64,000 nt of DNA from Marsupella aquatica (GCA_973895155.1 OZ316897.1:1925312-1989311), one strand, 5' to 3'; shown: positions 4,117 through 64,000, numbered from the stretch's first letter. The notes: generated from the letters alone by a model not told the origin. Translations and numbers: made by a program.

Positions 4117-5008
4117 GATGAGATAACAAGGGGTTGGGGGCCAAACCACTCTTGGCTGGGGTGAGAGGGTTTTGGGACACATATATAAAGGGACAACCAC
4201 ATTTGACAACATCAAAAACTATAATAAGGTGTTGTGCTTTTTTTTTGCCATGGTCCTCATTTGAATTTACAGGGCCAATTTGGGTTTAAGAAATTCAATA
4301 TGAAAAAAAACCAAAGCAATAGAGACCAAAAATGGCCCTCACATCAGCTCCTGAGGTCAACTTCCATCTGATTGCGGCGACAGCACCGAGCGGAGGCAAG
4401 TAAAATGTTGTGCGGCCAGCCTCTACTACGAGTGGGGCGACCACACTACCGCCTTGCTCCGCACGCCGACCATAGACTGCCGCATTCTTGCGGTCAACCT
4501 CCCACCACCCTCCTTCCCCAACCCGATTACCCGGGGCGGCCCTGCCTCGCCCCACTCTCCCCCTCTTCCCTTCTCCCCTGCCTGAGTCTTTTTAACGACA
4601 TATTTTTACTTGACATCTTCTTAACGATATCTGTCACATAACAACTTCTTTGGTCACACAACTTCTCTGTTTTAATGACATCTTCTTACTTGATGACATC
4701 GTTTACATAAAGACTTCTTCGGCGACACAACTTCTTTTTTTAATGACACCTTTTACATAACAACATCATTGGCAACACGACCCTGGACACTACCTCTATT
4801 TTCTTAACGGCATCTTGGGCCGACACGACATCTTTTGTCTTAAGGACATCTTGGCCGACACGACATCTTTTGTGCAACGCACGAGTATTGAGCTAGTACC
4901 ATATAATGCAGGCCTAATGTCATCTGGTGGCACTTCAAGCCAAACATTTCCAACAACCAGCAAGATGACGTCACAGTTGAGCTTTTGAATTGGCCCAAGA
5001 GGCAAGAG
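3241..5008. repeat. Pair of about 110-bp direct repeats (3241-3352 and 4898-5008) enclosing a (TA)n tract
   Basis: accatataatgcaggccta..atgtcatctggtggcacttcaag..ttgagcttttgaattggcccaagaggcaagag present twice with a few differences. Confidence 0.8.
4068..4113. repeat. (TA)n microsatellite
   Basis: Directly visible dinucleotide run. Confidence 0.97.
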
Positions 5009-5642
5009 GCAAAGTCTAAAAATAATGACATTGATCACATTTTTTTGTGTTGGGCCATTGTTAGACTTTGAATGGGAGCATCATATAGATAATGTTTATT
5101 AAACCTAAACTTGCAACCCCCCAATTTTCCTCCCTCCTTCCACCCATTTCCCCTGCAAGCTGTCTCACTTTTTTTATTTTCTTGTTTCCGTTCGATCTCT
5201 TTCTGATTGATTTGATGACTCCGGTTTTGGCGGGCAATGAATTGGCTCGGTTTGCCAGTCTTTGGTTGGCAATTTTGTGTTGGGTAGCTTTATTTGCCCA
5301 TATTGTGTGTAAGCTGGAGGAGGATCATTGAGAAGTCTTGGAAAATTATTTTTCCTCAAATTATTTATTAAGTAGGTCCCAAAGCTAGGTAACAATGTAA
5401 AATGTTGCCCAAACAGGCTTGAGACAACAAAATTATGGCTAAAATATTCTTCGGATGCAGCTAAGGATTGACTGCCCCGGTGGCACAGAAAAAATTTCAT
5501 TAAAACCTCAAAAGAATAAGTGACTAAATTAAACATCATTGGTTTAAAGTGCACATTGTCACCATTATCAACCTTTGATCTCATCAGCTGATCTAAAAAA
5601 TCTGACTACATGCACCCTTTCTTGTGACTGTTGTGTACTATC

Positions 5643-11636: not shown

Positions 11637-14600
11637 CTACTTGTGATGCAATTGCAAAACCTGCAATACGTCACGGTGTCTAGAGAAACTCTCCAAAGGA
11701 ATCACTTTGGTAAATGCGTCAGCCGGGTTGAGTTTACCATCAATCTTGACTAGCTCAAACAAATTATCAGACACAGCCTGCCTGATAAAATGGTACCTGA
11801 CGTCAATGTGCTTCACTCTACTGTCCATCACCTGGTTCACAGCAAGGTGGAGCGCACTTTGACTATCACAATGGAGCTTCACATTCCCCTGTGGCAATCC
11901 CATTTCAGTGATAAGTCTATCCAACCAAATCGCTTCCTTTGCTGCTTCTGCAGCTGCAACATACTCCGCTTCTGTAGTAGACTGAGCAATACACTTCTGC
12001 AAAGTAGACCTCCAACTTATGCATCCACCGCCAAGTGTGAACACGTATCCTGTTGTTGATCTCCTTCGGTCCAAATCTTGTCCATAGTCAGAATCTACAT
12101 AGCCAATCAATGATCTAGCATTCTTTGCATTCGCATCAAATAAAAGACCATGATCCACGGTACCCTTCAAGTACCTGATAATCCACTTCACTGCTTCCCA
12201 GTGTACCTTCCCTGGATTCGACATGTACCTGCTCACCTTGCCCATAGCCATGGCAAGATCAGGTCTAGTGCAAGTCATCAAATACATGAGACTCCCCACT
12301 GCCTTGTCATATGGAACCTTTGACATCAACCCCTTCTCTGTGTCATCCGTAGGACAGAACGCTGATGATAACTTGAAGTGTGGAGCCAACGGGGTACTTA
12401 CTGGCTTGCTATTCTCCATGTTGAACCTTGCAATTACCTTCCTCGCATAACTGCTCTGCGTCAACCATAGCTTGCCAGCCTCCAAGTCCCTAGTGATCTC
12501 CATACCCAAAATCCTCTTAGCTGGCCCTAAGTCCTTCATCTTAAACTCTGCACTAAGCAGTGCCTTGAGCTTAACAATCTCAGACCTATCCTTGGCTGCA
12601 ATTAGCATGTCATCCACATAAAGTACTAAAACAATGAACCCAAAGACAACATTCTTCACCGGTTTCAAATACACACAAGGGTCAAATACACTTCTGTGAA
12701 AACCTTGTGACCGAATCCAATCGTCAAACCGCTTGTTCCACTGTCTTGGTGACTGCTTCAACCCATACAAGGATTTCAGCAATCTGCAAACCAATTCCTC
12801 CTGTCCTCTCTTCACAAAACCTAGCGGTTGTCTCATGAAGATCACCTCTTCCAATGTGCCATAGAGGAAAGCTGTGACAACATCCATCTGATCTAGGAGC
12901 AGACCAAACATTACAACAAGTACACACAATAGTCGTATTGTAGAGTACTTAGCAACTGGTGAGAAGACCTCATTGTAATCCACACCTTTCTCTTGTGTGA
13001 ATCCCTTTGCTACCAATCTAGCCTTGTAGACCTTCGATCCACCTCCTATGGAATTATCCTTCAGCTTGTAAATCCACTTGCTGTCCACCACTTGCTGACC
13101 CTTAGGCAGCTTAACAAGCTCCCAAGTTTTGTTGTCCTTTAGTGACTGCATCTCCGTTTGCATTGCTGCAGTCCACTTCTGCTTCTCTTTTGAAGCACTT
13201 GCCTCATGAAATGAAGAAGGTTCTCCTTCTTCCAAAATTAACGCATCACCCTCATCATCAGCTGTAAAATCATCCTCTTGCAGTTGAGATGAATCAACCC
13301 ACTGTCCATACCTTGATGGAGCGTGTACAGTGCGACCAGATGTTCTTCTAGTCGATGACTCCGATTGATCTGCGTGTGCTGGTACAATTTGAAGCTCAAC
13401 AGCATCCACTTGTTGCTCACCAGCATCAACAAACTCCTCTGGTTCCTCTGGCATAGGAACCAGCTCCATAATTGGAGCAACTCCTTCTCTCCGGTCATGC
13501 ATCTCATAACCAATCTCCCCCTCAACGAGATCCGGGATAGGAGATTTTCCTTTGTCAGTACGGGAGACCTGAGTATTCTCCCCCTCCTTCAATAATCTGG
13601 ATTCATTGAAGGAAACATCCCTACTGACAACGAGCTTACAGGCAATAGGATCCCATAGCCTATAGGCTTTCACACCACTCTGGTACCCAAGAAAAACACA
13701 TTTCCTGGAGGTAGGATCCAACTTGGTCCTATTCTGCTTTGGTGTGAGAGCATATGCATCACTTCCAAAAATTACCAAGCCATGATAGTCTGCTTGCCGC
13801 TTATAGCGCATCTCAAACGGCGTTTTGAAATTGATAGCACTAGAAGGAGAAAGATTTACCAAATAAGCTGCGGTATTGACAGCTTCTGCCCAAAATTCTT
13901 GTGGTAAACCTGATTGGCTCAACATACTCCGTGACCGCTCCAACAGTGTCCGATTGAGCCTCTCAGCAACACCATTCTGCTGCGGAGTATAAACTGTGGT
14001 GAGATGGCGAGTTATCCCCTGTTCTGAACAGTACTCTTCAAATTCCATTGAAGTGTACTCCCCGCCGTTGTCTGACCTCAGACTCTTCACCCTTGTATCC
14101 AAACACTTGATCGTGTTTCCAGTCTGATTCTCCACCTGGGCCTTCCACTTCTTAAAAATGGACAAGACATCAGACTTATGCGTCATGAAATAAATCCACA
14201 CAAATCTTGAGTAATCATCAATAAATGATACATAGTACAACTTTCCAGAGTGTGAGGGAGTCGGGGATGGACCCCACACGTCACTATGTATGTACTCAAG
14301 AACCGCTTTGGAACGATGAGTTCCAACACCAAAAGCACGACGATGCTGCTTTCCAAGAATGCAATGCTCACAAAACTCTAATTTACAAGATTGCAAATCA
14401 GAAATGAGTCCATTCTTCCGTAAGATAGCCAAACCCTTCTCACTCATGTGGCCTAGCCGTGAATGCCACAGTTGAGTCATCTCCTCGTGAGACTTGGTTA
14501 CATTGGCCTCTCCACATACAGTATTGCCCTGTAACACATACAAATTCTTTTGTCTACTCCCCTTCAAAATCACTGTCTCTCCCGACCTGACTTGAAGTTC

Positions 14601-14909
14601 ACCATCAATAACGCTCCATTGATGACCATTTGAATCCAACACACCGAGTGAAATCAGATTCTTACGCATGCCAGGTACATACCTGACTCCGGACACTATG
14701 CGCACAGCGCCATCAAACATTTGAATCTTCACAGACCCAATTCCCTCAATTTGACAGGAGTGATCATTTCCCATCAGAACTGAACCGTTTGAAACAGAGT
14801 AAGAACTGAAAAACTCACGAATGTAACAAATATGAAAAGAGCAAGCACAATCAAGAATCCACACATCATCTGCTCTCCTAGATGACGTGCACAGGGCATA
14901 CCCCCGGCT
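11637..14909 (-). CDS. pol: Copia pol polyprotein (protease, GAG-pre-integrase, integrase, RT, RNase H)
   Basis: WILDCACSFH (PR); WHSRLGH..CEHC and HSDVWGP/SDNGGEY/QQNGVAER (INT); YKARLVAKG, LYGLKQ, YVDDML (RT); YVDSD..STTEAEY..CDSQSA..KHIDVRYH (RH). Frame is open from directly after the gag TGA. Confidence 0.96.
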   Translation of the reverse strand, partial: SRGYALCTSSRRADDVWILDCACSFHICYIREFFSSYSVSNGSVLMGNDHSCQIEGIGSVKIQMFDGAVRIVSGVRYVPGMRKNLISLGVLDSNGHQWSVIDGELQVRSGETVILKGSRQKNLYVLQGNTVCGEANVTKSHEEMTQLWHSRLGHMSEKGLAILRKNGLISDLQSCKLEFCEHCILGKQHRRAFGVGTHRSKAVLEYIHSDVWGPSPTPSHSGKLYYVSFIDDYSRFVWIYFMTHKSDVLSIFKKWKAQVENQTGNTIKCLDTRVKSLRSDNGGEYTSMEFEEYCSEQGITRHLTTVYTPQQNGVAERLNRTLLERSRSMLSQSGLPQEFWAEAVNTAAYLVNLSPSSAINFKTPFEMRYKRQADYHGLVIFGSDAYALTPKQNRTKLDPTSRKCVFLGYQSGVKAYRLWDPIACKLVVSRDVSFNESRLLKEGENTQVSRTDKGKSPIPDLVEGEIGYEMHDRREGVAPIMELVPMPEEPEEFVDAGEQQVDAVELQIVPAHADQSESSTRRTSGRTVHAPSRYGQWVDSSQLQEDDFTADDEGDALILEEGEPSSFHEASASKEKQKWTAAMQTEMQSLKDNKTWELVKLPKGQQVVDSKWIYKLKDNSIGGGSKVYKARLVAKGFTQEKGVDYNEVFSPVAKYSTIRLLCVLVVMFGLLLDQMDVVTAFLYGTLEEVIFMRQPLGFVKRGQEELVCRLLKSLYGLKQSPRQWNKRFDDWIRSQGFHRSVFDPCVYLKPVKNVVFGFIVLVLYVDDMLIAAKDRSEIVKLKALLSAEFKMKDLGPAKRILGMEITRDLEAGKLWLTQSSYARKVIARFNMENSKPVSTPLAPHFKLSSAFCPTDDTEKGLMSKVPYDKAVGSLMYLMTCTRPDLAMAMGKVSRYMSNPGKVHWEAVKWIIRYLKGTVDHGLLFDANAKNARSLIGYVDSDYGQDLDRRRSTTGYVFTLGGGCISWRSTLQKCIAQSTTEAEYVAAAEAAKEAIWLDRLITEMGLPQGNVKLHCDSQSALHLAVNQVMDSRVKHIDVRYHFIRQAVSDNLFELVKIDGKLNPADAFTKVIPLESFSRHRDVLQVLQLHHK

Positions 14910-15944
14910 TCATAAAACATACTCATCATTGAGTAAATCAGCTTCTCCATCAGCCCTAGCCACATTTGCCGATGAAGTTTCCGCTGCCTTTCCCTTACAG
15001 TCTCGCTTGAAGTGTCCAACTTGGTTGCACTTCCAACATGTCACCTGCCTCCTCTGAGGGGATTTACCCTTGGACTTAGATCTGGATTTAGATCTAAACT
15101 GGGTTCTACGGTCCCCAGTTGGTCGCTGCATACTCCTCCCACGGTTAACATTGAGGGCAGCACCAGATGATGAAGGCTGTGACGTGATGTGCATCTTCTG
15201 CTGAAGATCATCACTAAGCAGAGAACTTACCACGTCATTGTATGAAATGGTATCCCTATCACGATGCAACAACACTCGTGATAGGGACTGGTAAGATGGA
15301 GGCAATGAACTAAGAAGCTGCAGAGCCTTCGTCTCATCATTCAAAGTCTCCCCAAGGTTTTCCAAGTCAACGACCATGTTGTTGAAAGCATCCACATGGT
15401 CTTGCAACTTCGTACCAGATTCCTTCATCCTGAAACTCATCAGTTTGTAGGAAGTGTAGAGCCGGTTCGACAACTCCTTGCGGTGATACTTGCTCTGCAA
15501 TTCCGCAAACAAGGACATGCAATCCTTATGTGCACCTAACTGCTTGATGATGGGAGGCATGAGATAGAGTGTAACACACCACACTCCCTGCTCCTGCATG
15601 CGGTCCCATTGTTTCTCATCAACATCGTCTTCACGAGGGCTCAGCAGTTGGCCCATCCCTGACGCATAAAGCACTCCCTTCACTTGCTTCTCCCATAGCA
15701 AGTAGTCAGAGCGCCCATCATACTTTGTCACTTCATACTTGGGTCCCCCAAGCTTGAAAGTCCCCATCTTCTTCTTTACCGTGAGCTCCGGTAGTAGTAC
15801 TGCTTCCTCCACCACACGCCGCACCAGTGATGGTATCGGTGTCACGTGCTCTTCCTCCTGCTCCTCTCTCTGCCCCTGAAACCTCCGCGGTGATCCTCGT
15901 GCTTCAAGTTCCACGTCTTCGAAAAACTCCTCCGAATCACTCAT
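14910..15944 (-). CDS. gag: Copia gag
   Basis: KYDGRSDYLLWEKQV, UBN2-like core (LQDHVDAFNNMVVDL..LLSSLPPSY), CCHC knuckle CWKCNQVGHFKRDC. Confidence 0.95.
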   Translation of the reverse strand: MSDSEEFFEDVELEARGSPRRFQGQREEQEEEHVTPIPSLVRRVVEEAVLLPELTVKKKMGTFKLGGPKYEVTKYDGRSDYLLWEKQVKGVLYASGMGQLLSPREDDVDEKQWDRMQEQGVWCVTLYLMPPIIKQLGAHKDCMSLFAELQSKYHRKELSNRLYTSYKLMSFRMKESGTKLQDHVDAFNNMVVDLENLGETLNDETKALQLLSSLPPSYQSLSRVLLHRDRDTISYNDVVSSLLSDDLQQKMHITSQPSSSGAALNVNRGRSMQRPTGDRRTQFRSKSRSKSKGKSPQRRQVTCWKCNQVGHFKRDCKGKAAETSSANVARADGEADLLNDEYVL

Positions 15945-16940: not shown

Positions 16941-17793
16941 CACCCTTTCCAGCATCCTCACTGAGGCACCTGACACGGACCGAACTCGGATTCTTTCTTC
17001 CGGAGGGAAGGGCGCAGGAGGCTGGCTTCAGGCCAATCCAGTCATTCCTCACCTGCGGATGTCTTCAGCGGAGTTTGCGACAGCCATGCGTCTTCGTATG
17101 GGCTTGCCCCACCCACTTCTTGCTGGTTTCCCTCCTACTTGCACTTGTGGGAAGCCTTGTGATGCCACAGGTGTCCATCTTCTTCGATGCAGTTTGGGCG
17201 GCGAAACCATTTTTGTTCACGACGCTGTGAGAGATGCGACTGCTCAGGTTCTCTCTGGCTCTTTGGTCTGCGTGCGGCGGGAGGTGGTGCTCGAGTTACC
17301 TGGTCCTCCATCACAGCGGTTACGGGTGGATCTTACCATGGTCCGTGACGGTCACCGTACTTTGGCAGATGTAGTGGTGGCAAACCCATTGCGCCAAGAC
17401 ATCATTGGGACAGCGGCAACAACGGCAGGGGCAGCAGCATCACGAGCAGCAACAACGAAGGAGGCCAAATATGCTGCACGAGCTTCATCTGATAGCTTCC
17501 TGCCCCTTGCTCTTGAGATATTTGGGCGTCTCCATCATCAGTTCGACGGGCTTCTTCGCCAAGCTGCTCGGGATGTTCACGGCCGGATGGGTCCCACCGG
17601 GCCCCCGCTATCTGTTTTGACCACGCACTTTTGCCAACGCATTTCAGTCACCTTACAGCGTGCTCAAGCTCGGGCCGTCTATTGTCGATCTCTGACAGTG
17701 GGTGCTAGTGTGACTCCGCAGCGGCTAGCCCCCCTAGAGGACATTCCTGTCCCACTTGCCGATCTAGTTTCGACACTTGATGTAGACCACTAG
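16941..17793 (+). pseudogene. CRE-like element ORF, 3' part (zinc knuckle + REL endonuclease)
   Basis: Removing the Copia element and one TSD joins ..GRMHAF to TLSSILTEAPDTDRTRILSSGGKGAGGWLQANP..LRMSSAEF in frame with ORF 17059-17793. Confidence 0.85.
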
Positions 17794-31922: not shown

Positions 31923-32636
31923 ATGAATTTAGCTCAGTTGTTCACTGAACGAGATAGGTTAGATGGATCGAAGAACTGCATTCCCTGGTTCATTAAAGTC
32001 AAGAATCTCCTGAAACTAGATGAAGTCTGGGATGAGTTGGGTTTTAATCATCAACAGGAATCAGCTGGAGCTGATGGCGCTGATGGCACAGGAGCCGCCA
32101 ATGGAGCAGCTGGCGACGAAGACACTAATGTACCGAGAAATGCCCAGCGCAATGTTCAACTTGTCGATGCTGCAGGAGTTCCTCTTACTCCAAGAGAAAT
32201 TGCACGCAAGAAGGTGAAAGCGAAGTCCATCCTCGTACTGACGGTGAAGGATAGGTTTTTGGCCACCGTAGATAAGTTCGATGATCCAGTCGAGTGCTGG
32301 CATTATTTGAAGCAACGCTTTGGTGCTGAACTGCGTCAGAGACAACTTCTTCTTCAGGAGAAGCTGCAATTCGCGAGGATGACGGATGGAGTTTCAGTTG
32401 AAGAGTACATCACCCAAATTGATAACCTCGCTGGTCAACTTGCGTCTATCAATGCAGAAGTAGATGAAGTACAGCTGATGCAGATTGTTCTGACAGGGCT
32501 CCCTCGCAGCTGGAGTCCCTTCGTTTCTATCTTCGCTTTTGAGCTGTCCAGAACACCTCGACCTTCATACACAACTCTTGTGCAACGCTTGCAGACTGAA
32601 GACTATCGGCGAAAGAGTTTCGGGCGTAGGGTTTAG
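31923..32636 (+). CDS. Stand-alone Ty1/Copia gag (UBN2-type capsid) ORF, 237 aa
   Basis: RLDGSKN..PW..KVKNLL..EVWD, W..LKQRF, RM.DG.SVEEYI..I..L..QLASI, IVLTGLPRSWSPFV, LVQRLQTED are typical Copia gag motifs; no knuckle, pol or LTR follows. Confidence 0.8.
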   Translation: MNLAQLFTERDRLDGSKNCIPWFIKVKNLLKLDEVWDELGFNHQQESAGADGADGTGAANGAAGDEDTNVPRNAQRNVQLVDAAGVPLTPREIARKKVKAKSILVLTVKDRFLATVDKFDDPVECWHYLKQRFGAELRQRQLLLQEKLQFARMTDGVSVEEYITQIDNLAGQLASINAEVDEVQLMQIVLTGLPRSWSPFVSIFAFELSRTPRPSYTTLVQRLQTEDYRRKSFGRRV

Positions 32637-43215: not shown

Positions 43216-44756
43216 TCAACAGTTGTTGTAAGTTGAATCATCTGGTCCTGACAATTTGGACAATGGATTCCAACAGGATGCAGAATGCAAAGCGGGCAGA
43301 TTGAAGAGCTTTGATCAACTGGTCAAGCCACATGAGATCAACAGTTTGCCATGGAGAATGTCTCATTCAGCAGGGCTCATACCATACTGCTCAACCAATT
43401 CAGTAGACTTAATTTGTTTGCTTAAACATCATAAACGATCGTTCATGAAAATTTCTTTTTTCATGTAGCTGGCCTGGACAACTTTGGTTACGTAGCCAAG
43501 ACATGGATCATACTCTGCTTTTGTTCATAGTGGCTTTGAAATTCAAACAAGTCGCTCAATCCCAATTGAGATCTTCTGGAAGCAGAACTTCTCCTCTTCG
43601 ACAACAACTCATCTCCAGATCGCTGGTTAGATCGATGTCCAAAGCTAGCCAGCGTTTACTTCCGTGTACATCAATCTATTTTACATTCTCGTGTCCATCC
43701 GTCCGCTTTGATGTCCGCTTCGGCTCATACAGTCGAGCTTCCTTGATCGCCGCAAAGGAGATTAGACCAATCAGCATTTTTTCTGGAACTTCTTGGCCAC
43801 CCACATTTTAATTGAGCTACAAACTGTTGGGAAGCTTTTTCGATCGGCCCCAATAATCAGGCTCTCCGTCATCTTCTTTCTTTCTGGAGTACTTTTGCCA
43901 CTGACAAGCTTCTCATCTGCCTGGCTCTCCGTCATCGTCTTTCTGGAGTTCTTTTGCCAAAGACCAAGCTTCTCATCTTTCTGCTGACAATCTCTATCGA
44001 TTACAATGGGAATGCACCTCCCCTCAACTTGTCGCACTCGAAATTTCCATTACCACCACCTCACCGCCATCTCCCAGAGCGTTTCAACTCAATGGCACAA
44101 ACTCCGATCTCGACGACTGCCCGAGCTTCTGAGTCACAATCACACTACAACGAATTTCTGAGCTTGGATGAATGCTGCCCGGGCCCCTTGTTCAGTGATA
44201 CCACTGTCTATCCACAACGTCAAGCATTGTGGTTGCGACCGGACATAACAAGTTGGCACGGTGGCTGTCACCTGCAACACCAGTTCGCGGTCACCTTCAG
44301 GGCCTTGAAAGCAGAGTAGAAGGCCCGGCTGGCCTTCCACCCTTTTAGGAGCCCAAGGGTTAAGGGGTTTAGGTGCTATCTGTTGACTGCATCTTTTTTC
44401 CCCTCATGAAAGTATGGGCCTAAGAGGTCGATTTTGGGGAGAGATCTCCGGATCGAGGTGTGAGCATCGCGTTGGTGCCTAGTGATCGCGAGTCGTGATC
44501 CAGTGACTAGCGATGCGCGATGACGAATGTACTACGGAGCAGAGATCCTGCAAATCCCATGTCGTGCACCTCCGGAGGTCATCTTTGCCGGAAGTAAGTT
44601 CTCTTCCATGTATCATCCTACCTCCATCATTTCTATTGCCAATACCGCCAACTCTCGTGGAGTGATTTAAGGTTTCTCTCAATTGTGACAGAAACATTCG
44701 ATCGACGACGGGGGCTGCAGCTGCATTGAGCCGTTTGTCTGTCTATTGTGGAGGAG

Positions 44757-45998
44757 ATGGAGGGTGGACAGTCTGGGAGACAGCTACCCGAGCATATCGT
44801 AGAAATTATTATAGCGATGATGCCTTTCCCTTCAATTTTCAAGGCTAAGATGTTATCAAAAGCATGGCTGACCAGATTCTCTCCTACGGAATTTTGTGAA
44901 GGTGGGCGCAAGGAGACACTGGGCGCCAAAGAGTTCCAGAAACTGGTGAGCGAGAGGGCCAAGACTTGGGAGATCTTGGGCCCGGTTTGTTCTCGCGATG
45001 ATCATGACGAGTGCCATGTTCACAACAAAGCACGTCGTCCTTGCAATGAGAACTGCTATGCTTACAACCGAGCATCTCAGACCTGGCAAAGAATTCCATC
45101 CAGGCCTGTCATACCCATTCTCACCAAGCCAAAAGCCATCGTAATCGAAGGAGCCCTCATGCTCTTGCCTCGCGATGCCGATTACTATGACGGAAGACCC
45201 AGGAGGGCGAGGTGGACGGACCAATTATATGTAGCAAATATCTTGACCAGGAACTGCAAGTTACTGCCGGCTCGTCCTATTTTGGGGGAGGTGGAGACGA
45301 TTGACCTTGCAAATATTGTTCTCAATATGTCAATGCAAACGTACAAGGTGGTCTTGTTCGATCAAGTTTGGATCTTCAATAGATATGAGTTCTGGGTGCA
45401 AATCTTCGATTCCGTGTCTTGTTCTTGGAGACACAAGGAGCTGTTTGACTTACCACATCTTAAAAACCTGGGTCTTAGTAAAGCTGTTTATTTCAATGGA
45501 GCTCTGTATTTGACGGCCTGCACGTCCCCTATGTTTTTGATTGCGTTCGACATGGAGGAAGAGAAATGGACAGAACTGAGTTTAGGAGAGCTCACGAACC
45601 CGGAAGAAGATGTAGAACATTTCCAGTCGATAGTTGCTTGCGAAGCGGATCTGTTCATAATCTTCACAAGATTGTCTCACACGAAGGAAACGACTAGCTT
45701 TCGAGTTATGAAGGCTGATTTGAGCCTGGGCTCACTATCGCTCGTGACGGAGAGCCCTCCGAGAAGTTTCGAGTCTTCCATCTCTAGCTATCCTGTCATC
45801 GATTACGATCTTCCTATCATCTCTTGCGGTGGTTGCATATATTTCGGAGCGGCAAAGCAGGTGGGACATCGCTCAGCTCAGCAAATGCCGGTTTACAATG
45901 TGCGGGAGGATTGTTGGAGTTGTGTCTCTATGTGTCCCGATGGACTTTGCACTAATGGTTACTTTCAACCAGGTTTGTGTCCCTTCATTGCTGTCTGA
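44757..45998 (+). CDS. Intronless F-box protein with predicted beta-propeller (FBA/Kelch-like) C-terminus
   Basis: F-box LPEHIVEIIIAMMPFPSIFKAKMLSKAW; YVANILTR..KLLP, YKVVL, IFDSVSCSW, AVYFNGALY, AFDMEEEKW, VYNVREDCW; long uninterrupted ORF with ATG at 44757. Confidence 0.85.
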   Translation: MEGGQSGRQLPEHIVEIIIAMMPFPSIFKAKMLSKAWLTRFSPTEFCEGGRKETLGAKEFQKLVSERAKTWEILGPVCSRDDHDECHVHNKARRPCNENCYAYNRASQTWQRIPSRPVIPILTKPKAIVIEGALMLLPRDADYYDGRPRRARWTDQLYVANILTRNCKLLPARPILGEVETIDLANIVLNMSMQTYKVVLFDQVWIFNRYEFWVQIFDSVSCSWRHKELFDLPHLKNLGLSKAVYFNGALYLTACTSPMFLIAFDMEEEKWTELSLGELTNPEEDVEHFQSIVACEADLFIIFTRLSHTKETTSFRVMKADLSLGSLSLVTESPPRSFESSISSYPVIDYDLPIISCGGCIYFGAAKQVGHRSAQQMPVYNVREDCWSCVSMCPDGLCTNGYFQPGLCPFIAV

Positions 45999-51215: not shown

Positions 51216-52560
51216 TCAGGTAGCATGTGAAGCACAGGAAGGGCAAAACCATAACCCTTCTGGCACCTGGGTAAGTTCAGGCCAAAGGCAGAAAAGATGG
51301 TACCCTCCATTGCAATTGTCACACAGCAGCATCTGGTCAGCATCATCAATTCGTAAACACACTTTGCATGGATAATCAACAGGTGGGATCCAAGTAGAAG
51401 TGACAATGGTGGGATCTAGGTTAGGCAGACGACAAGGGGCGCAATTCTTGGCATTGTCAGCAATTGTGCGCCCATCTGCCCCTTGTAACTCTAGCACTCC
51501 AGACGGTCGAATAGCCTTAACCCTGAGAATGGTACGACTGGTAGAGGTGTCCAGGGTGTCGTTAGCTTGCCGCTGCAAGTACACAAAATCTCCCACATCA
51601 AACTTCTTGACCTTGGGCTGAAAAGTGCCCCCTCGTGTGTGTGCATAACGCGCAGTGTCCCTGTGCTGTGCAATGGCCAAATTCTCCATGGCCATGGGCA
51701 TAACCCTCTTGAATAGGGCAGCCCTCTCAGAGATCACATCAGACCAAGTCACGGTTGAATCCAAATCCACCACCTTAAGCATGTGAGCAGCAATTGCAGA
51801 AGGTGGAACTGGATGACGACCAAACAACAAGAAGTAGGGAGAAAAGTTAGACAATGATGCATGTCTGGACATCCTATACCCCATGGCAATGTAGGGTAAG
51901 GCCAGGTCCCAATCCTCCTTGTTTTTGGTGAGGCAGATCTTCCAGAGACCCTTCTTGCATGTCTGAACCATGCGCTCTGCCAAGCCATCTGCTTGTGGGT
52001 GATCTCGTGACGTTCGGCGATGATCAATGAGGGCCTGATCAAGCAGCTCCTGGAACTCTCCTCTGAACTCTGATCCCTGGTCAGTGAGACATTCTGCACA
52101 AGCTCCAAAGCGGCTAAGAACTTGTTGAAGGAATGTCTGACTGGTGCTGCGGGAAGTCTTATCTGGTAATGCCACAAGTTCTATCCACTTGGAAAAATGC
52201 TCTATCATGATCATGATGTAGAGATTACCCCGAGATGTGAGGGGTAATTCTCCAGCCAAATCACATGACCAACGATAAAACATGCCCTAAATAGGGAGTG
52301 GATGAAGTGTGGGTTGCCGAGATGTGAAGGAAGTCCTCACCCTATCACATTGTTCACACCGGGCAATAACATCCCGAACCTGACCATGCATGCCTCTCCA
52401 ATGATAATGGGGAACCAAGAGGCTGTAAGTCCTCTTGACGCCAAAATGACCAAGCTCACAATGTACCTTACGGATAAGGCCAACCCTCTCATGAATGGAT
52501 GGAACCACCACTTCCTTGTCTGGCAAGCAGCGCACGAGATGATCTCCCTTCCACAAGTAG
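51216..52560 (-). pseudogene. Gypsy integrase (HHCC + DDE core) with C-terminal PHD finger (51234-51368)
   Basis: HCELGHFG..CEQC; WSCDLAG, LTDQGSEF, HPQADGLAERMV; PHD C4HC3 pattern CKVC..MLLCDNCNGGYHLFCL.P.L..VPEG.WFCPSC; in-frame TAG at 52287. Confidence 0.93.
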
Positions 52561-52829
52561 CGCTTGGACCTTTGCTGAATTTGGTCTCTCTGGGTTGCAG
52601 TAACATGTGTGGGGTACTCTCCATGCTAAAGGAATCTCAGAGTATCGTTGTCCTCCCATATGTCCACCACAGGTTGGTCAACAATGTAGCATGGCAGCAA
52701 AGCAAGATAGGTAGATGCATGAAATGTAGGCAGGATGGAACCCTGATCAAAATCCTGCTGTGCATCTGAGGAATCATCAGAGGCAATCAAAGGGATGCGG
52801 GACATAGTGTCAGCATTTTGATGTGTCAC

Positions 52830-54240
52830 ACCAGGCCTATGAATTACCTCAAAGTCATACTCCTAGAGTATGAGCGCCCAACGAGCAAGCTTGCCAGTAA
52901 GCTTGTCGTTAGTCATCAACCACTTCAAGGGCTGGTGGTCTGTGTAGAGAGTAAACCTGGTCCCATAGAGGTAGGGCCTGTAATGTATGACAGCCCACAC
53001 AATAGCAAGGCATTCACCCTCATAAGAAGAATAATGACTCTTTGCCTGATTGTTGCTCCTGGATGCATAGGCAATGACGTACTCCTTACCTTCCTCATCA
53101 TGTTGGCCAAGAATGACACCAATCCCAAGGGCACTCCAATCTGTATGTAGCACAAAGACCTTGCTGAAATCAGGTCTTCTCAGCACCGGGTATTCTGAGA
53201 GCTTCTCCTTCAAAGTGGCAAATGTTGCCTCAGCATCTGTTCTCCATGTCCAAGTCACATTCTTTTTCAACAAAGAGTACAATGGGTGTGCAATGGTACT
53301 GAAATCTTTGATGTAGATCCGGTAGTAATTGCACAACCCAATAAAGCTCCTAAGAGTGTGAACATCAGTAGGAGTGGGCATTTCCAAGATGGATACCACC
53401 TTGGCCCAGTGAGCCATGGTCCCATTTGGAAGAATGCGATGCCCAAGATACACTACTAATCTGACAGCGAATTCACACTTCTTGGGATGTATCTTTAGGT
53501 TCACCTTCTTAAGCCTCATGAATAGCTCCTCAAGGTCAAGTAGATGCTGGTCAAATCCTTTGCTGTGGACCAACACATCATCAATGTAGCATTTCATAAA
53601 CTCAGCACCTTGAAGAACCTGGTCCATGACTCTTTGAAAGAATATGGGTGCATTCTTCAAGCCGAATGGCATCACCAACCACTCCCATAGTTGGTTACTA
53701 CCATGGAAAGTTGTTTTCTTGCGATCCTTTGCAAGCAGCAAAATCTGGTTAAAGCCTTGCCTTAGATCCACAAGAGTGAAGATGTTTGAGTCTCCAATGC
53801 TGTCAAATAGCTCCTCTGGCCGTGGCATGGGATACCTATCTTGGGGTGTGACCAGGTTCAGTGGCCTGTAATCCCCACACATGCGCTTCTCTGTCCACAA
53901 TCCACTGGAATCCTTCTTTGCTGGCATCACTGTAGCTGCTGCAAAATCTGATGTAGATGGCTGAATAAGACCAGCTTCATAGAACTCTTGGCACCTCTCA
54001 TCCACCAATTGCCACTCATGCTTACTCAAACGGTGTCTCCGCCTGAAGATAGGTGTTTCATCAGTCAACTCAATGGAGAACTGCATAGTCTTGCACTTAC
54101 CCAAGTCCTTCATAGAGAAAGCAAACACGTTCTCATGTTTGAGGAGCAAATTCAGCAGCTGGTCCTTCTGTCTTTTACTCAGGTGGTTGCCCATGATGAA
54201 TGTGTAGTTGGCAACACTAGGAATAGGACCTGATGTCAGT
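52830..54240 (-). pseudogene. Gypsy reverse transcriptase + RNase H
   Basis: RMCGDYRPLN, DLRQGFNQI, VMPFGLKNAP, YIDDVLV, YLGH, FIGLCNYY; RH HTDWS..IAYASRS..YEGECLA..YTDHQPL..LARWALIL*EYDF. Confidence 0.95.
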
Positions 54241-54559
54241 ACTCGTGCTTGAAGAGCCAAAAGTGCTAGCCTCTCCACTGTCCAAGCTGCTGGCATGCTG
54301 CTGATAAGGTGATGAGGCCTCTCCAAGGCCTGTTGTACCTGCTGATCTGAAGTGGTCCACACCATGAAACTCAGAAATAATGTCAGCCACGTTACAAGGG
54401 ACCTCCTCCCCCCAAACACTTGGACTGAAGTGGTGAGTGTTGGACAAAGGTAAGTGCACCTGGTCTGGATGCCATGCAGCAGCACCATGGAGTGGTAGGG
54501 CTGGAACTCCTGATGCTGGATGAATGTACATCTGAAAAAGGATGCAAGTGACCAGAAGC

Positions 54560-55480
54560 CAAGTGAGAGTGTTAAGATCCATTACCTTGCCAAGTAAAGC
54601 ATTCCTGGCTAGCCTGGTGATCTTGGTGTGGCCTGTAGTACCAGGTTGGAAGCCCATAGCCCGTTCTCTCTCCGTAGGACTAGGTTCATCCCATGTACCA
54701 ATAGAATGTCGATAAACCAGGCCAGGACCATCACCTTGAAAAGCATGTGCACCTGGAAAGGACACAAATGTAGGCCAAGCAGCACAGGGCTCTCCAATGG
54801 TATTGGCTGGATACCAAGGGGCTGGCTCCTGTCGTGTAACTGGTTGGCAAGAACTGGCAGGATCCAAAATCTGGTCCACTATGAGGTTAGTGTCCCTGGA
54901 GGTGTGGTGAAGAGCTAACTCCAGCAAGGAAACTGGTGCCAGGTTAGTCCAAAAGTTACGAAGACGATGTGCATAAGAACCACAATGCACTGCATCAATG
55001 AGAAGGGGTGGTCCCAAGTAGTGCTGGACCACACTGAACGCTGGTCAAACTGAGATGGAGTGTTCTCAATGATATAACCAACAACAGGGTAAAGGGATTG
55101 AGCCCAGGTGAGAACCTGAACCAATGCTATGAAAAGGCCATAACGGGAATCATGCAGTCTAGTGCCGTGACCAGCAGCTGAAAACCCTTGGCATTCCCAA
55201 CCAGCTATGATCAAATCAAGGGAGCCAAGAAGGGTTAAGTGTCGATGCTGGACAAGCTGGATATCTGGAGGGAAGAAAGAAAATGCAGACTTCCATGCAC
55301 TGTGTGGAAACTGCTGGGGAAATCGCTCTGAAAATTCCAGCAGATGGGATTCAGCCACTTGCCTTGCACTTGGATCAATGTCCATGTAGATGTACTACTT
55401 CACCACCATGCCGGACTGTAGGAGAGCTTCCAGGCCTGTAGAAATGCCACCAAAAATCTCAAGTAATGTAAGGCCCTCTG
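54560..55480 (-). pseudogene. C5 cytosine DNA methyltransferase domain embedded in pol
   Basis: Motif I LLEIFGGISTG; II YIYMDID; IV DLIIAGWECQGFSAAG; V (L)HDSRYGLF; VI YIIENTP; VIII AHRLRNFWTN; IX EPSPTERERAMGF; X LLGKVMD, all in canonical order. One TAG (55395) and one frameshift (about 55035). Confidence 0.88.
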
Positions 55481-58400
55481 GAGCAGGAGTCCATGTAACT
55501 GGTGCGCTCAAGATTGGGGCTATTGGCTGTCCATTGTGCTGCCCAAGGTCTTCAAACTTGCGCAATGCAGCCACCAAAGGTCCATGGGTTGCTTGGAGCC
55601 GTTGCACCACCTCTGGTTGATGATCCACATTGTTGGAAAGTGCTGCTATACGTGCAGCAGCATGTGCAGCAGCCACCTCATCATTATCCTCCTCAATCCA
55701 ATCCTGCAATGGGTGGTTGACATAGGTAGTTGTGTGCACTTCTTTCAACACACAGTGATGAGCCATAGGTGTATGGGCACCATGCAAATCAAGTGGAATG
55801 TAGCCCAAGTGTGAGCCATCAGTATGCCAATCAACTCTGTAGTATGCATGCTCATGCCAGTTGTCAATGGTAAAACCTGGTGGGAACAAAGCCTCCTGGC
55901 CAATGAGCACATCATACGTAGTGGCATTGGTAACCAAACATCTGACTGGGAAATGTTCCTGATCTGTATCTCCATTAAAAGTGAGAGTGAGTAAAGTAGA
56001 ACTCTCACCCAGCACATGATCCTCCACAATGCCACTAGCAGTCCGAATGTGCCACCTGGATTGTTGTAAATGATCAATCAGCGGTCCCATCTTCTTGGCA
56101 AACTGAATGCCCAATATCACTGGTTGAGCGCCTGTGTCTAGCATGACCACCTGAGGAGTGTGACCCTCCAACTTGACCGCTGAATTCCTGTTGTCAACAA
56201 TGGCAATGGTGGTAAAAACTAAAGTCCTGTCGCTAGGCACCACTTTTGGCAAATGATGAGGTACCTTGTGAAGGGAGTTAGTGTCCACGGTCTTCCCACT
56301 CAACAGCATAGCCAGGAAAGATGGAGCAGCATGACCAGAATCAAGTGTAGCTCTGGTCACACAATCTGCAGCAATATTGTCATCTCTACCACTGGAAATC
56401 GATACCGGGATAGCCAAACCAGTGGAAGCATGTAATGGAGAAGAAGAAGGTCCAGTATGTACATGAGATTCGACCTCCAAAACCGGTGTCATAGTGGCTG
56501 ATGAAGAATGCAGTGAACCCTCTAGCGCTCTGATGACAGCTCTAGCATCCAGCTGTAAATCATGGCAACTAAAAAGTGGAGTTGTAAGAATCCTTTGTGC
56601 CATATCGGAGGTGAAATGCTCAGGCAGCTCAGGAGAAACAACTCTCTGTGAAATGTCAGCAGCACCTAGTGGTGGAATGTATGTAGCTGCAGCTCCCTCC
56701 CCCCTTGCCAACAAGGTGCACTCTTCAACAAGCGTGAGTGGCTGAAAAGATTGGGGCATGACAGCCCGAGCTCCCCTAGCTCTAGTCATAGGACCGGCAG
56801 CAAGACCATCAGCCTGTACAATGCGGCGTGTGGGAGCAGTACGGGAGGCAACACCAGCCTGCTGGTAAGCAAAATAGGAAGGGCAGAATGAATCTGAAAA
56901 TTTTGCGGTAAGGCCAGGCTGTGTAGCAGAGGATAGCACACACTCACCCATATGAGCATCAAATGGCAAGCCATAGAAAGAGCGGGGTAGAGGTGCTGAA
57001 CTGTTAGTGGTGCCTGGGCCAGGGATGGGTTGCACATGACCAGCCGGTTGAGAAGGACCAGCAGAGGCAGTTGACTTGCCTTTGATGTTGGCAAGTTGGG
57101 CATGTAAGGACTCAAGCTCATGAGTCAGAGACTGGAGTTGAGTTGCCTGTGCGTTGTGAGCCTCCTTCTGAGCTGGTTGCTTCTGTTGCTGCTTGGGCAA
57201 TTTGTTAGCATTGGGTGCTTTGCCACTGGAAGGAGGAGCAACTGAGGCAATAGGAGCCCTCCTAGCTGGTGGGGGAGTGGAAGCAGGAGCAGGATGAGGG
57301 GCCTGCTGTCGTAGCTGCTTCCTCTTTGGGAATTTGGCAAAACAAACTGCCTCCAAGTGACCCACTTTCCCGCAAAAATCACAAGACAGGTACTCAGTAA
57401 CAATATCACATTCATTAGCCTTGTGATTGGGGTTACCACAGTAGTTGCAAGATGGCAGCATGAAAGCAGCATGTGCTGGCTTGGTCTTGGAACCATACTG
57501 TGGCACACGGGAAGGAGTGGCCAATGTAGGGGCAGCAGCCTGGTACCTGGATCACGGTGGATGCGCAATACTGGCCTCATAATGTGCATGGGTCAACACA
57601 AGTTTCTCAGCAGTGTCGTAGACATTGAGCAAAGTGTAGCTGTCTCCAAACTCTGAGAATACTTGCGAATGGAGAGTTGGTGTGCCCTCCAATGCACAAA
57701 GATAATGATGAGCAACCTCCAGGTCAATGATGCTCTGGGTGTCCTCCTTCAGCTTGAGAAGCCGGTGATACATCATCTTCAATGTTTCATCGCGCTGCCT
57801 TACAAAGGTGGCCAACTACATGATTTTGTCAGCACTCTTGATTGGGAATTCCAATTCAAGAACCTGGAAAAACTCAACCACTGGATCAGCAAAGGCAGGG
57901 AAATCAATGGTGGGAGCAATGCCTGATATAGCCGAGGATGTAGCCTATGCCAAGACAGTGGGAGTAATTGGTGCAGTGGTAGGAACTGGAGTAGGAGGGG
58001 AAGTGGCAAGAGCAGCAACATGGGCTGCAATGGCATTCTGTAAGGCCAATTGTGAGGCTGCTGCAATTGCACTCGCATAGGCAGGGTTAGGCATTTGGGT
58101 GACAGCAAGCAGCCGTTGAGAATGTTGCTCATACACATCCAAAGCCTCATGGTGCACATACCTGGCTAGCCGCTTAAATGCAAATGCATTTGTGAAATTG
58201 CTGCCATACTTCAACTCCAATTTGTAAACGACAGTGTAGAAAGTTAATTTGAACTCACACAAAGAAACAGTGCCTGGCCGCCCACTGAAGCGCTCAATGC
58301 GGCCAGATGAGTGGCTGACATCCATGTTGTATGTCGATGAAGCTGGAACAACCACTGATGAAGATGGAGTAAAGGGTAAAGATGTAATAGCAGGCTTTGG

Positions 58401-58589
58401 GGTAGTGGTGAAGCGACCGCCAAATGTAGCAGAAGGGTTGCGTGGTGTGGGTGTTGCTGTTGTCTGCTGGCGCCGTTGAAATTGTCGAGATTCCAATGAA
58501 ATTGGCACCAACGGTCGTGGATCACTCCGTAAGTGGTACCGGGGTGTTGGTGGCGGTGAGCTGCTACGACTCGGCTCCTCTGCTGACAT
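55480..58589 (-). pseudogene. Gypsy gag, two CCHC knuckles and aspartic protease
   Basis: IERFSGRPG..EFK..F..; QRDETLKMMYHRL (gag-like); CNYCGNPNHKANEC and CDFCGKVGHLEAVC; VMLDTGAQPVILG..DVLIG (PR); same frame across stops at 57945, 57816, 57552. Confidence 0.85.
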
Positions 58590-61500: not shown

Positions 61501-61809
61501 GCAGCAAACTTTTCCCTTCAATTTTACCTTCAACATTCAATCAAATTCGTTATTGTTCTCAGACCCGCATGGAAAGATTTTCTGAAGGAGCCTACTGTCT
61601 CAAACTCAGATTAAGATTTATAGATCTTCAAACTTCCAAGATGGTTCTTGGTTTTTTGTCACATTTCACTCTCTGGTGAAAATAGGTATCATATGAGAAT
61701 AATGAGGGTTTCCCACTTAGACTTGCCTTTTTTGAATTTTAATAGAAATGAAGACAAAAGTCATCAGGCATATTGACATACATAACACCCATCTTTCTTT
61801 CACATAAAT

Positions 61810-62580
61810 TTTGGTGGGGCCCTAGAGTCACAGCCTAGAGGCTTCAGTCTAGAAGCCTAGACCCTAACTCTAGCTTCGCATAGAGATTAGTTATATAGAT
61901 GTTGGTAGGGCCCTAGAGTCAGATGTTGGCAGGACCCTAGAGTCACTGCCTAGAGTCTTCACTCTAGAAACCTAGACCCCAACTCTAACTTCTCCTGGCA
62001 ATTAGTTATAAGATGTATGTCCATCTTAGCTTCTTTTACAATGCAAAAGTCTACACTGGAATTGTGTAGTTTGTCTGTGGGCTGAGCAATCTATAGTAAT
62101 GTCTCTATGGTTCCCAGATTGAGTACTGTGCCTGCACAGGGCTGAGAAATCCATGTTGGCCAATAAGCTACAAATGTGGTTAACAAATATGTTTTTTTTT
62201 TTGTCTTGAAACCGAAAGCTGACCCATCCAACAGAGGATAGACCAATAAGCTACAAATGTGGTTAACGAATATGTTTTTTTTCTTTTGCCTTGAAACCGA
62301 AAGCTGACCCATCCAACAACAGAGGATAGACGATCAACTCCAGAGCATGCACCTCTATAGGGTAGCCCACAAGGGGGTCATACCCAGGAGCAGGAGGGAG
62401 AGAGGGTTGGACCCCATCCAACAGAAAATAGAATCAACTCCAGAGCATGCACCTCTGTAGGGTAGCCCACAAGGGGGGTCATACCCAGGACCAGGAGGGA
62501 GAGGGTTGGACACCTCTGTAGGGTAGCCCACAAGGGGGTTCATACCCAGGACCAGGAGGGAGAGGGTTGGACCAGAACCC
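61810..62580. repeat. Cluster of local duplications and tandem repeats
   Basis: gccctagagtca units (61818-61960); about 83-bp duplication ccaataagctacaaatgtggttaac..gaaaccgaaagctgacccatccaaca (62160-62330); cacctct(a/g)tagggtagcccacaagggggtcatacccagga..gagagggttgga x3 (62350-62572). Confidence 0.88.
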
Positions 62581-64000
62581 AAAGAGGACCAGCCAGGGCT
62601 GAAGAGAAACCAAAACTTCCTCTTGCCTTGTATGTCCCTAAACTCAGGACAGTGGATAGGCTGCGGCCAGCGAAGTTATTTTCTGAAACTTCAATTTTAT
62701 TCTCAGACTTGTAATCTGAGCTTTTGTATTTGGAGATTCACTCATCAAACAGCTCTTAGTGCAATCTTTCCGTCCAACATGGCGAGGAAATTGTTGGAAG
62801 GAAGCCAAATTCAAAAGAAAATGAATGAGACTTCTACTTCACAATCATCACCTTTACAGCCCTGCGTACTATCCAGAAGAACATTCTTCACGCAAAGTAT
62901 CTGGTGGCAATTCTAAGGAACGGATGAGCACAATCATCGTGGCCGAGAAAGTGACACTGAAGACATTCGTCATAATGACCACCGTGTTCAAGCCATCGAG
63001 AAGACGGGGAAACCCAGAAACTTTGGCTTATATACAGGACAGACAGGATTCCCAACTCAATGGTCAAACCAAACAGCTTTGGTGCGTTGATACCTTTCCA
63101 CAAAATGGCTGCTTAATTAGGGTGAGGTGGATAAGTGCATTGTCCCAACAATTACAGAGAACTTCGATACTTTGGAGAAGGCAGAGACATTCCCATCTTC
63201 GTGAAGAAGGTTGGTAACCTTGCTCACACCAGGCATTCAGATTTAATTTGTTCCCCATGGGCAGAGGTTGGGCCTTGACCTGTCCACCGCAACTTAAAGC
63301 AGATGAGAGACTATACTGGAAAGGTTTTCCATGTACCAATTGCAACATACATTGGACCATCCATTGGCATAGACGTTAAGAGTAAAAACCCAGACCTGCG
63401 GAGGAAAGAATGGGCAAAATTTCACTAGAAATGCAAGACAGATGAATTAAAACTTGAGAATCTTCCATCGTTAAACTTTTCGTATGCTCATTTGAATTGC
63501 TCAATGGTCAAGAATGTCGAACCGCCTTTCATAATAAATTACAGCAAAAGCCAAGTTTACTAGCTTCTGGACTGGGCCTATGGGGACATCTCTAGTTCAA
63601 GGTTCTTCCCGGATCACTAACAATTAGTTTCACGGATTAATTACAGATGTTCTTCTATTCCTCTTAGGTAACAAAACACACGGCTCAGACTTCCACACTA
63701 CCAGTCGGAGATGGCAATACAGGAGGCTCAATTGCAGCCAGAAATAATCAGTCGTGCAACAAATACTCGAGGCCACCAGACATTCTACTCAGCCTCTGGT
63801 GAAAATGCCAACTTCAATGCGGTGAGTAAGTGAGGAGTCTCCTGAAATGGACAGTCAAAATTGTGCTTGTTCTTGCTATACAATAACCATCATGAAACCA
63901 TCACCTCGGGCAGAGGCTTAGGCAGCTGCATTCCAACCATGTGCGCCGGTACGTCCCTCCCACTTCGGTGCTGTAGTCGTTGATGTAAATTCTCAGCTAT

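Follow-up and report, generated by a model that had tools for sequence, protein, structure and literature searches.

A fossil retrotransposon of the streptophyte Gypsy-DNMT3 lineage in a probable land-plant genome

Retrotransposons that carry a DNA methyltransferase invert the usual picture of a host that methylates and a transposon that becomes silenced. On the plant side, the example so far is one alga, Klebsormidium nitens, whose KnitGypsy-Dnmt3 is of the Gypsy-DNMT3 kind (de Mendoza et al. 2018, Nat Commun 9:1341; PMC5890265). According to that paper, it is a Gypsy-type, intronless retrotransposon with a non-rearranged DNMT3-like domain inside Pol, and the enzyme gave no methylation in yeast, in an assay that the authors judged inconclusive. 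According to the same paper, the domains of SymbioDIRS-Dnmt3 from Symbiodinium, DNMT3-type and likewise inside a retrotransposon Pol, methylate CG de novo in yeast (PMC5890265). A 2026 preprint mentions "streptophytes (Gypsy-DNMT3)". Here, we describe a further copy of this kind, which lies in a 64-kb stretch of DNA from Marsupella aquatica (GCA_973895155.1, OZ316897.1:1925312-1989311), hereafter called the window. All coordinates are positions in the window, and the element is read on the minus strand.

From 58325 to 51216, the minus strand holds in succession gag, two CCHC zinc knuckles, a protease (PR), a complete C5 cytosine methyltransferase (MT) domain, a reverse transcriptase (RT), an RNase H (RH), an integrase (IN), and a PHD finger. 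From this identity and anatomy, we are highly confident that the locus is a decayed, non-autonomous Ty3/Gypsy-type copy of the streptophyte Gypsy-DNMT3 lineage, and by sequence it is a land-plant representative of this known kind. The features listed in the initial annotation of the window were all recovered at their minus-strand positions by motif coordinates and Pfam, and PF00145, RVT_1, rve, and PHD all matched as separate pieces of the unrepaired copy. The kind of element is not new: Klebsormidium is the source of the published Gypsy-DNMT3 type (PMC5890265), and the MT clade of the window includes a K. nitens protein. The initial annotation knew of no characterised land-plant example, and our literature search likewise found no paper describing land-plant copies or mentioning the Marchantia gene models discussed below. 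What is added here is the presence of the same lineage in land plants (liverworts and peat moss), conserved in relatives and very abundant in the sequencing runs that hold the sequence.

KnitGypsy-Dnmt3 and the window's family share their type, the lack of introns, and purifying selection, with a Ka/Ks < 0.2 given for the former in the paper and a dN/dS of 0.10 for the latter. The K. nitens protein KFL_000540020, which we assume to be among the published KnitGypsy-Dnmt3 copies, is on the same side of the MT tree as the window (Shimodaira–Hasegawa approximate likelihood ratio test [SH-aLRT] support 99). However, the window's clade is only ~35% identical to the Klebsormidium domain and forms a separate branch (SH-aLRT 100), its motif IV has Glu-Cys where the Klebsormidium-like branch has Pro-Cys, and its host is a liverwort-like land plant rather than an alga. 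We infer the gag-CCHC-PR-MT order of KnitGypsy-Dnmt3 from its nearest relatives. In contrast to the window's family, SymbioDIRS-Dnmt3 is a DIRS element with a tyrosine recombinase from a dinoflagellate, and its acquisition of the domain was independent in the authors' view (PMC5890265).

The methyltransferase as an integral part of the element

The closest relative of the window copy, a metagenome contig (L001), carries gag-PR-MT-RT-RH-IN-PHD in one frame of 2384 codons, with a single TGA inside the MT at a position where the window has Arg. Its amino acid identity to the window is 58% from gag through the N-half of the MT, 79% over the C-half, and ~82% from RT to PHD (54239-51216). A second locus (L002), for which the nearest named relative is Sphagnum magellanicum, has the MT and RVT_1 in one open reading frame (ORF), followed by integrase and PHD finger. 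A third (L004) is a single ORF of 2188 residues with the same order, which ends after the integrase core and in which no PHD finger was detected. PR-MT or MT-RT adjacency is seen in 30 of the family's hits. These relatives show that live members read gag, CCHC knuckles, PR, DNMT3-type MT, RT, RH, IN, and PHD finger as one continuous gag-pol frame. Between L001 and L002, dN/dS is 0.10 for the MT, 0.08 for RT-RH, 0.06 for the integrase, 0.055 for the PHD finger, 0.14 for the protease, and 0.33 for the linkers, values that are approximate because dS between the two exceeds 1. By this sequence comparison, purifying selection on the MT and the PHD finger is no weaker than on RT and integrase, which implies that both domains serve the element.

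In the window copy, the MT segment contains a stop and has two flanking frame changes, which, taken alone, would suit a one-off secondary insertion or a host DNMT3 pseudogene captured in a single copy. We regard such an origin as highly improbable. Relatives from several hosts carry the same domain in the same place and in frame. When contigs of four public runs holding the sequence were aligned to 52600-58500, they covered the segment at 85-100% identity, and none showed a PR-RT junction skipping exactly this segment. Compared with sister contigs, the window copy has lost 19 bases at one frame change and gained 4 at the other. The dN/dS of the domain is 0.10. The sister copies thus led us to reject a one-off insertion; none without the MT segment was found, and the view of the initial annotation that the MT is integral to pol rather than nested within it is borne out.

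The MT domain itself spans 54538-55490 and was identified by PF00145, by a hidden Markov model (HMM) free of window sequence, by a family profile run against PDB, and by its motifs. These occur in canonical, non-permuted order: motif I, EIFGGISTG, which binds S-adenosylmethionine (SAM) (55434-55460); motif IV, GWECQGFS (55179-55202); motif VI, IIENTP (55056-55073); motif VIII, AHRLRNFWTNL (54940-54972); motif IX, ERERAMGF (54649-54672); and motif X, LLGKVMDLN (54571-54597). A TAG at 55397 divides motif I from motif IV in the window copy. Single-sequence searches of PDB with two broken pieces gave no significant match: the motif IV piece reached only M.HhaI at E 0.15, and the C-half had DNMT3A as its sole match at a nonsignificant E of 0.085, with motif VIII and motifs IX-X colinear. 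Taken by themselves, these searches would leave room for a chance resemblance in a degraded polyprotein linker, with no real MT behind it, but the remaining evidence makes this the least probable of the explanations that we weighed, and we give it next to no credence. The motif IV piece matched PF00145 at E 2.2e-5, with 24.5 bits against a gathering score of 22. In an exhaustive HMMER search, the C-half matched 676 cluster representatives with E ≤ 1e-3, of which 399 reach E ≤ 1e-10, and many of these matches are polyproteins of 1000 to 3456 residues.

Since the broken pieces are not significant singly, a family profile was needed. An HMM of the MT domain, built without the window's own rows and scanned against the six-frame translation of the 64 kb, matched only three minus-strand pieces, which are colinear on the profile (E 2.1e-82, 4.6e-43, and 7.9e-7) and, as sequence matches, lie far beyond chance. 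A profile made from an alignment of MT domains from five loci plus short hits was then compared with PDB. Its best matches were DNMT3A (6.5e-24), DNMT3C (1.4e-21), and DNMT3B (2e-21), followed by tobacco DRM (8e-15), DRM2 (1.4e-12), M.HhaI (1.5e-9), and DNMT2 (1e-6), while neither DNMT1 nor CMT was matched in PDB at E ≤ 0.01. We examined the fold on L002, the closest intact domain, rather than on the broken window copy, whose three MT pieces are 54-73% identical to it. The AlphaFold model of the L002 domain is very confident (predicted local distance difference test 95.6, predicted template modelling score 0.93) and can be superposed along its full length on DNMT3A, DNMT3B, and DNMT3C (E 5e-19, target-normalised template modelling score 0.84). 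PF00145, the window-free profile, and the fold match together exclude chance resemblance, and by sequence and modelled fold the domain is a DNMT3-type C5 cytosine methyltransferase. It shares with mammalian DNMT3A/3B/3C (e.g., PDB 6F57, 6U8P, and 8TCI), its best profile and fold match, the order of motifs and DNMT3-like motifs I, VIII, and IX-X. In contrast, identity to the mammalian enzymes is ~21%, the insert between motifs VIII and IX is longer, motif IV has Glu-Cys, and the domain is embedded in a retrotransposon polyprotein and has no PWWP or ADD domain.

Anatomy, ends, and decay of the window copy

The frame of the element runs from a Met at 58325 to a natural TGA at 51216-51218. The initial annotation had begun the element at 58589; alignment with relatives instead places the start of gag most likely at Met 58325, where the alignment to L001 begins. 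Gag with its two CCHC zinc knuckles occupies 57340-58325, and the knuckles lie by motif coordinates at 57408-57449 and 57342-57383, with a weak zf-CCHC match that is below the Pfam cut-off. The aspartic protease (55887-56177) matches gag-asp_proteas at E 2.5e-5 over residues 450-546 of the ORF at 55395-57524, below the gathering score, and is kept in relatives; its active-site motif, MLDTGAQ, is at 56124-56144. A poorly conserved linker between MT and RT follows the MT domain at 54262-54537. It belongs to a frame without a stop in 259 codons, has the linker dN/dS given above, and is continuous in L001 and L002.

The RT and RNase H region (52866-54215), whose frame ends at the TAG at 52865, contains RVT_1 (53433-53894, Pfam E 1.4e-27) with the YIDD motif of RT (53568-53591), and RNase H (52866-53246, RT_RNaseH E 1.2e-35). 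The integrase (51996-52490) consists of an HHCC zinc domain (Integrase_H2C2, 52332-52490, E 2.8e-14) and a DDE core (rve, 51996-52277, E 1.3e-13), with one TAG just upstream at 52628 and another inside at 52289. A PHD finger (51234-51368, Pfam PHD E 4e-11) forms the integrase C-terminus. The Ty3/Gypsy order of gag-CCHC, PR, RT, RNase H, and IN is thus present, with the MT sitting between PR and RT. Within the 64-kb window, there is no second copy of the element.

Because the ends of the element were not located, its assignment to Ty3/Gypsy rests on domain content and order. Neither long terminal repeats (LTRs) nor other terminal repeats were found above chance around the window copy by repeat finding at two settings, by blastn with word sizes of 7-9, or by Smith-Waterman alignment against shuffles, where the best local alignment between the flanks scores 17 and the shuffled maximum is 16. 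None was found above chance around L001 or L002 either. The lack of detectable LTRs at the window copy may reflect truncation or decay. A Marchantia locus (L008) has the repeats A 5007-5299, coding, B 17139-17257, A 17260-17552, and B 17552-17662, the DIRS-like A-coding-B-A-B arrangement that the paper's account of the Klebsormidium element reports (PMC5890265). No such arrangement was detectable in the window, L001, or L002. Upstream of the element, window positions 61800-62600 contain short tandem or dispersed direct repeats of 61-88 nt in two to three copies each, which are unrelated to the flanks of the element.

Seven in-frame stops interrupt the copy: TAG at 57947, 57818, 55397, 52865, 52628, and 52289, and TGA at 57554; the first two TAGs and the TGA lie in gag. 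Two indels mark the exact points at which the window changes frame. At 55037-55038, sister contigs carry 19 more bases, and at 54235-54239, many sister contigs lack 4 bases, so that the −19 and +4 changes together restore the original frame and leave the stretch 55038-54262 one frame off. The MT was initially annotated as sharing the protease frame; this is correct for its N-half with motifs I-VI, whereas the C-half lies in the shifted stretch between the two indels. By its sequence, the window copy is a fossil that codes for none of the element's proteins, the enzyme included. For the tree below, and for that purpose only, its MT was read as it stands, with X at the breaks.

At 57554, where the window has TGA, nearly all sister contigs have CGA, and positions where the window has A/T and the sisters have G/C outnumber the reverse by 163 to 95 in run X1. 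CpG is depleted in the element, with an observed/expected ratio of 0.25, compared with 0.58 for the remainder of the window and 0.46 for L001. On this sequence pattern, the host probably methylated the window copy, which then decayed through C-to-T change. In one run, which contains ~41% of the window's sampled words, the high repetition of the family is seen from the 6219 contig pieces that aligned to the element: 1677 at ≥99% identity, 2326 at 95-99%, and 1917 at 90-95%. None of the runs holding window sequence is on record as RNA. Air metagenomes (runs X7-X10) contain 9-12% of the window's sampled words, which is compatible with spores or fragments, from the host or one of its close relatives, being carried in the air.

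Relatives and host range

A search with the MT region of L002 matched a Calypogeia fissa protein (P0184), 65% identical and containing protease and MT; Marchantia polymorpha Mp_8g17980, MARPO_0008s0049, and MARPO_0084s0073; and Klebsormidium nitens KFL_000540020 (E 7e-29). The other named matches are from Sphagnum magellanicum, S. fallax, Closterium, and the chlorophytes Haematococcus and Monoraphidium. The S. magellanicum protein, which shares 90% identity with L002 along 23% of the query, was not placed in the tree. This maximum-likelihood tree of 90 MT domains is unrooted and contains no host DNMT3, and is hence silent on the donor and on the number of captures. It splits in two at SH-aLRT 99, and the split matches domain order. 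On side A, the order is PR-MT-RT-RH-IN and all named taxa are streptophytes, namely Klebsormidium (KFL_000540020), Closterium, Calypogeia, and Marchantia (Mp_8g17980). On side B, which includes Haematococcus, it is RT-RH-MT-IN-PHD. Inside side A, a separate clade (SH-aLRT 100) unites the window with L001, L002, and P0183.

Also on side A, and also in land plants, is a Marchantia/Calypogeia sub-lineage with the order gag-PR-MT-RT (Mp_8g17980, MARPO_0008s0049, and Calypogeia P0193; loci L008, L009, and L005). It differs from the window in that its domain is ~40% identical, its motif IV has Pro-Cys, and one TAG-CAA-YCA stop lies between MT and RT, as seen in L005 and Marchantia L008. These stops (TAG CAA CCA or TAG CAA TCA, at L008:13850-13858 and L005:6000-6008) are in frame with the downstream RT and have a tobamovirus-like leaky context. 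A leaky stop at this place was rejected for the window's clade, because the window, L001, and L002 all read through. The gene model Mp_8g17980, which UniRef lists as a DNA (cytosine-5)-methyltransferase, corresponds to the gag-PR-MT portion of a retrotransposon present in multiple copies (L008:5007-17662, KZ772727.1). L008 and L009 are 100% identical over 8048 bp, and both have a TAG in the protease active site (LDSGA*P). Because of this TAG and of a frame change between 14461 and 14464, upstream of RT, they were rejected as an intact Marchantia copy.

The side-B type comprises ~80 hits (P0044, P0084, P0112, P0124, P0142, and others, with loci L006 and L007) in which a DNMT3-like domain lies between RNase H and integrase; Haematococcus is the only named member placed in the tree. 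Many members with the RT-RH-MT-IN-PHD order continue for a further 300-400 residues beyond the PHD finger. This tail has no Pfam match, and a language-model look-alike search put it near phage methyltransferases (MTS, N6_Mtase, and Eco57I; score 0.95). By their sequences, the members of this group may be chlorophyte elements that combine methyltransferases of both the C5 and the N6 type with a PHD finger and are akin to the DAM-LTR elements of a preprint (10.64898/2026.05.21.726589).

The land-plant host named in the initial annotation is probably right, since the one host-like ORF of the window and the closest named relative of the element both point to Calypogeia fissa, which makes a liverwort the probable host. 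This ORF of 416 residues (44748-45998, plus strand) encodes a KIB1-4/DUF295-type beta-propeller (PF03478, E 2e-6) and is the sole host-like gene seen in the window; among named proteins, its best match, at 42% identity, is F-box-associated and comes from the leafy liverwort C. fissa. The window is otherwise largely transposon-derived. At 11637-15944 on the minus strand, it contains an apparently well-preserved Ty1/Copia pol ORF of 1075 residues (RVT_2, rve, and gag_pre-integrs), closely preceded on that strand by an ORF of 344 residues. A further fragment of Copia gag lies apart from these at 31923-32636 (plus strand).

What the enzyme and the PHD finger may do

In phmmer searches against PDB, the PHD finger matched CHD4 (7.7e-16) and WSTF (5.8e-15), as well as KDM5/Lid, ATXR5, BAZ2A/B, PHF21A, AIRE, and UHRF1, and by this sequence evidence it is genuine. 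Most PHD fingers of that set read unmodified H3 tails (H3K4me0 or H3R2). A preference of the window's finger for unmodified H3 tails is, on sequence similarity, a lead. The finger takes the place, at the integrase C-terminus, of the chromodomain of chromoviruses; no chromodomain is there. Chromoviruses are alike in having a chromatin reader fused to the integrase C-terminus, presumably guiding integration, but that reader is a chromodomain and not a PHD finger, and chromoviruses lack a methyltransferase.

Within the MT, the catalytic Cys is kept, while in the window, L001, L002, and Calypogeia P0184 the canonical Pro-Cys of motif IV is replaced by Glu-Cys. Among 111 family members scored, 66 have Glu-Cys, 37 Pro-Cys, and 8 another dipeptide. 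The Klebsormidium-like and Marchantia branches have Pro-Cys, whereas the window's clade, Closterium, and the greater part of side B have Glu-Cys. Apart from the motif IV Pro, conservation extends to the ENV Glu (in IIENTP), the RxR (in AHRLRNFW), the SAM-binding motif I, and motifs IX-X. The altered dipeptide in 66 of 111 members, together with the lack of methylation by the Klebsormidium domain in yeast, as given in the paper's account of that assay (PMC5890265), raises the question of whether the domain, although retained, is a working DNA cytosine methyltransferase at all. It might instead be catalytically altered or dead and be kept for binding DNA or RNA, for RNA methylation, or, much as DNMT3L, for recruiting or titrating host DNMT3 partners; purifying selection, for its part, shows some function but not which. 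We consider such an altered role unlikely, though worth bearing in mind. All of the other catalytic and cofactor-binding features listed above are conserved, the modelled fold of L002 superposes on active DNMT3A/B over the whole domain, and Pro-Cys and Glu-Cys sub-lineages adjoin in the tree, which fits a tolerated substitution better than a changed function.

If the domain is instead a DNA methyltransferase, as we favour, the element could work as follows. The polyprotein would be cut by the protease, which would release the MT domain. The substrate of the MT would be DNA, be it the cDNA of the element or the freshly integrated copy. The PHD finger would anchor the integrase at silent chromatin that lacks H3K4 methylation, in a way similar to the chromodomain of chromoviruses. 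We hold this sequence of protease release, DNA methylation, and PHD-guided integration to be a tentative scheme, which falls somewhat short of even chances. The initial annotation further proposed that the MT could be packaged in the particle, that it could methylate cDNA or the target site, and that writer and reader make up one coupled system; these proposals are likewise conjectural.

Several points weigh against the overall reading. The dN/dS values are approximate at the divergence of L001 and L002. The window's motif IV lacks the catalytic Pro-Cys dipeptide, Glu-Cys being typical of its clade. There are no detectable terminal repeats, so the element ends, the target-site duplication, and the primer-binding site were not located. 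The Klebsormidium domain was negative in yeast in a test that its authors called inconclusive (PMC5890265), and DNA methylation by the lineage is predicted from sequence. Finally, the assignment of the host from sequence rests solely on similarity to Calypogeia proteins.

A bolder possibility, which we regard as improbable in its entirety, is that in live land-plant members the unusual Glu-Cys DNMT3 domain and a PHD finger for unmodified H3 tails make up one self-contained system, which would direct the integrase to chromatin without H3K4 methylation and have the element methylate its cDNA or the site of insertion. Whatever its use to the element, the enzyme calls for care in annotation, as some bryophyte DNMT3-like genes, e.g., Mp_8g17980, are retrotransposon ORFs. 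As relatives exist in the model plant Marchantia, that use is open to experiment and genetic testing. If the self-contained system were real, it would allow a family of very high copy number to endure in bryophyte genomes, where the element would select the heterochromatin it inserts into and then strengthen it.

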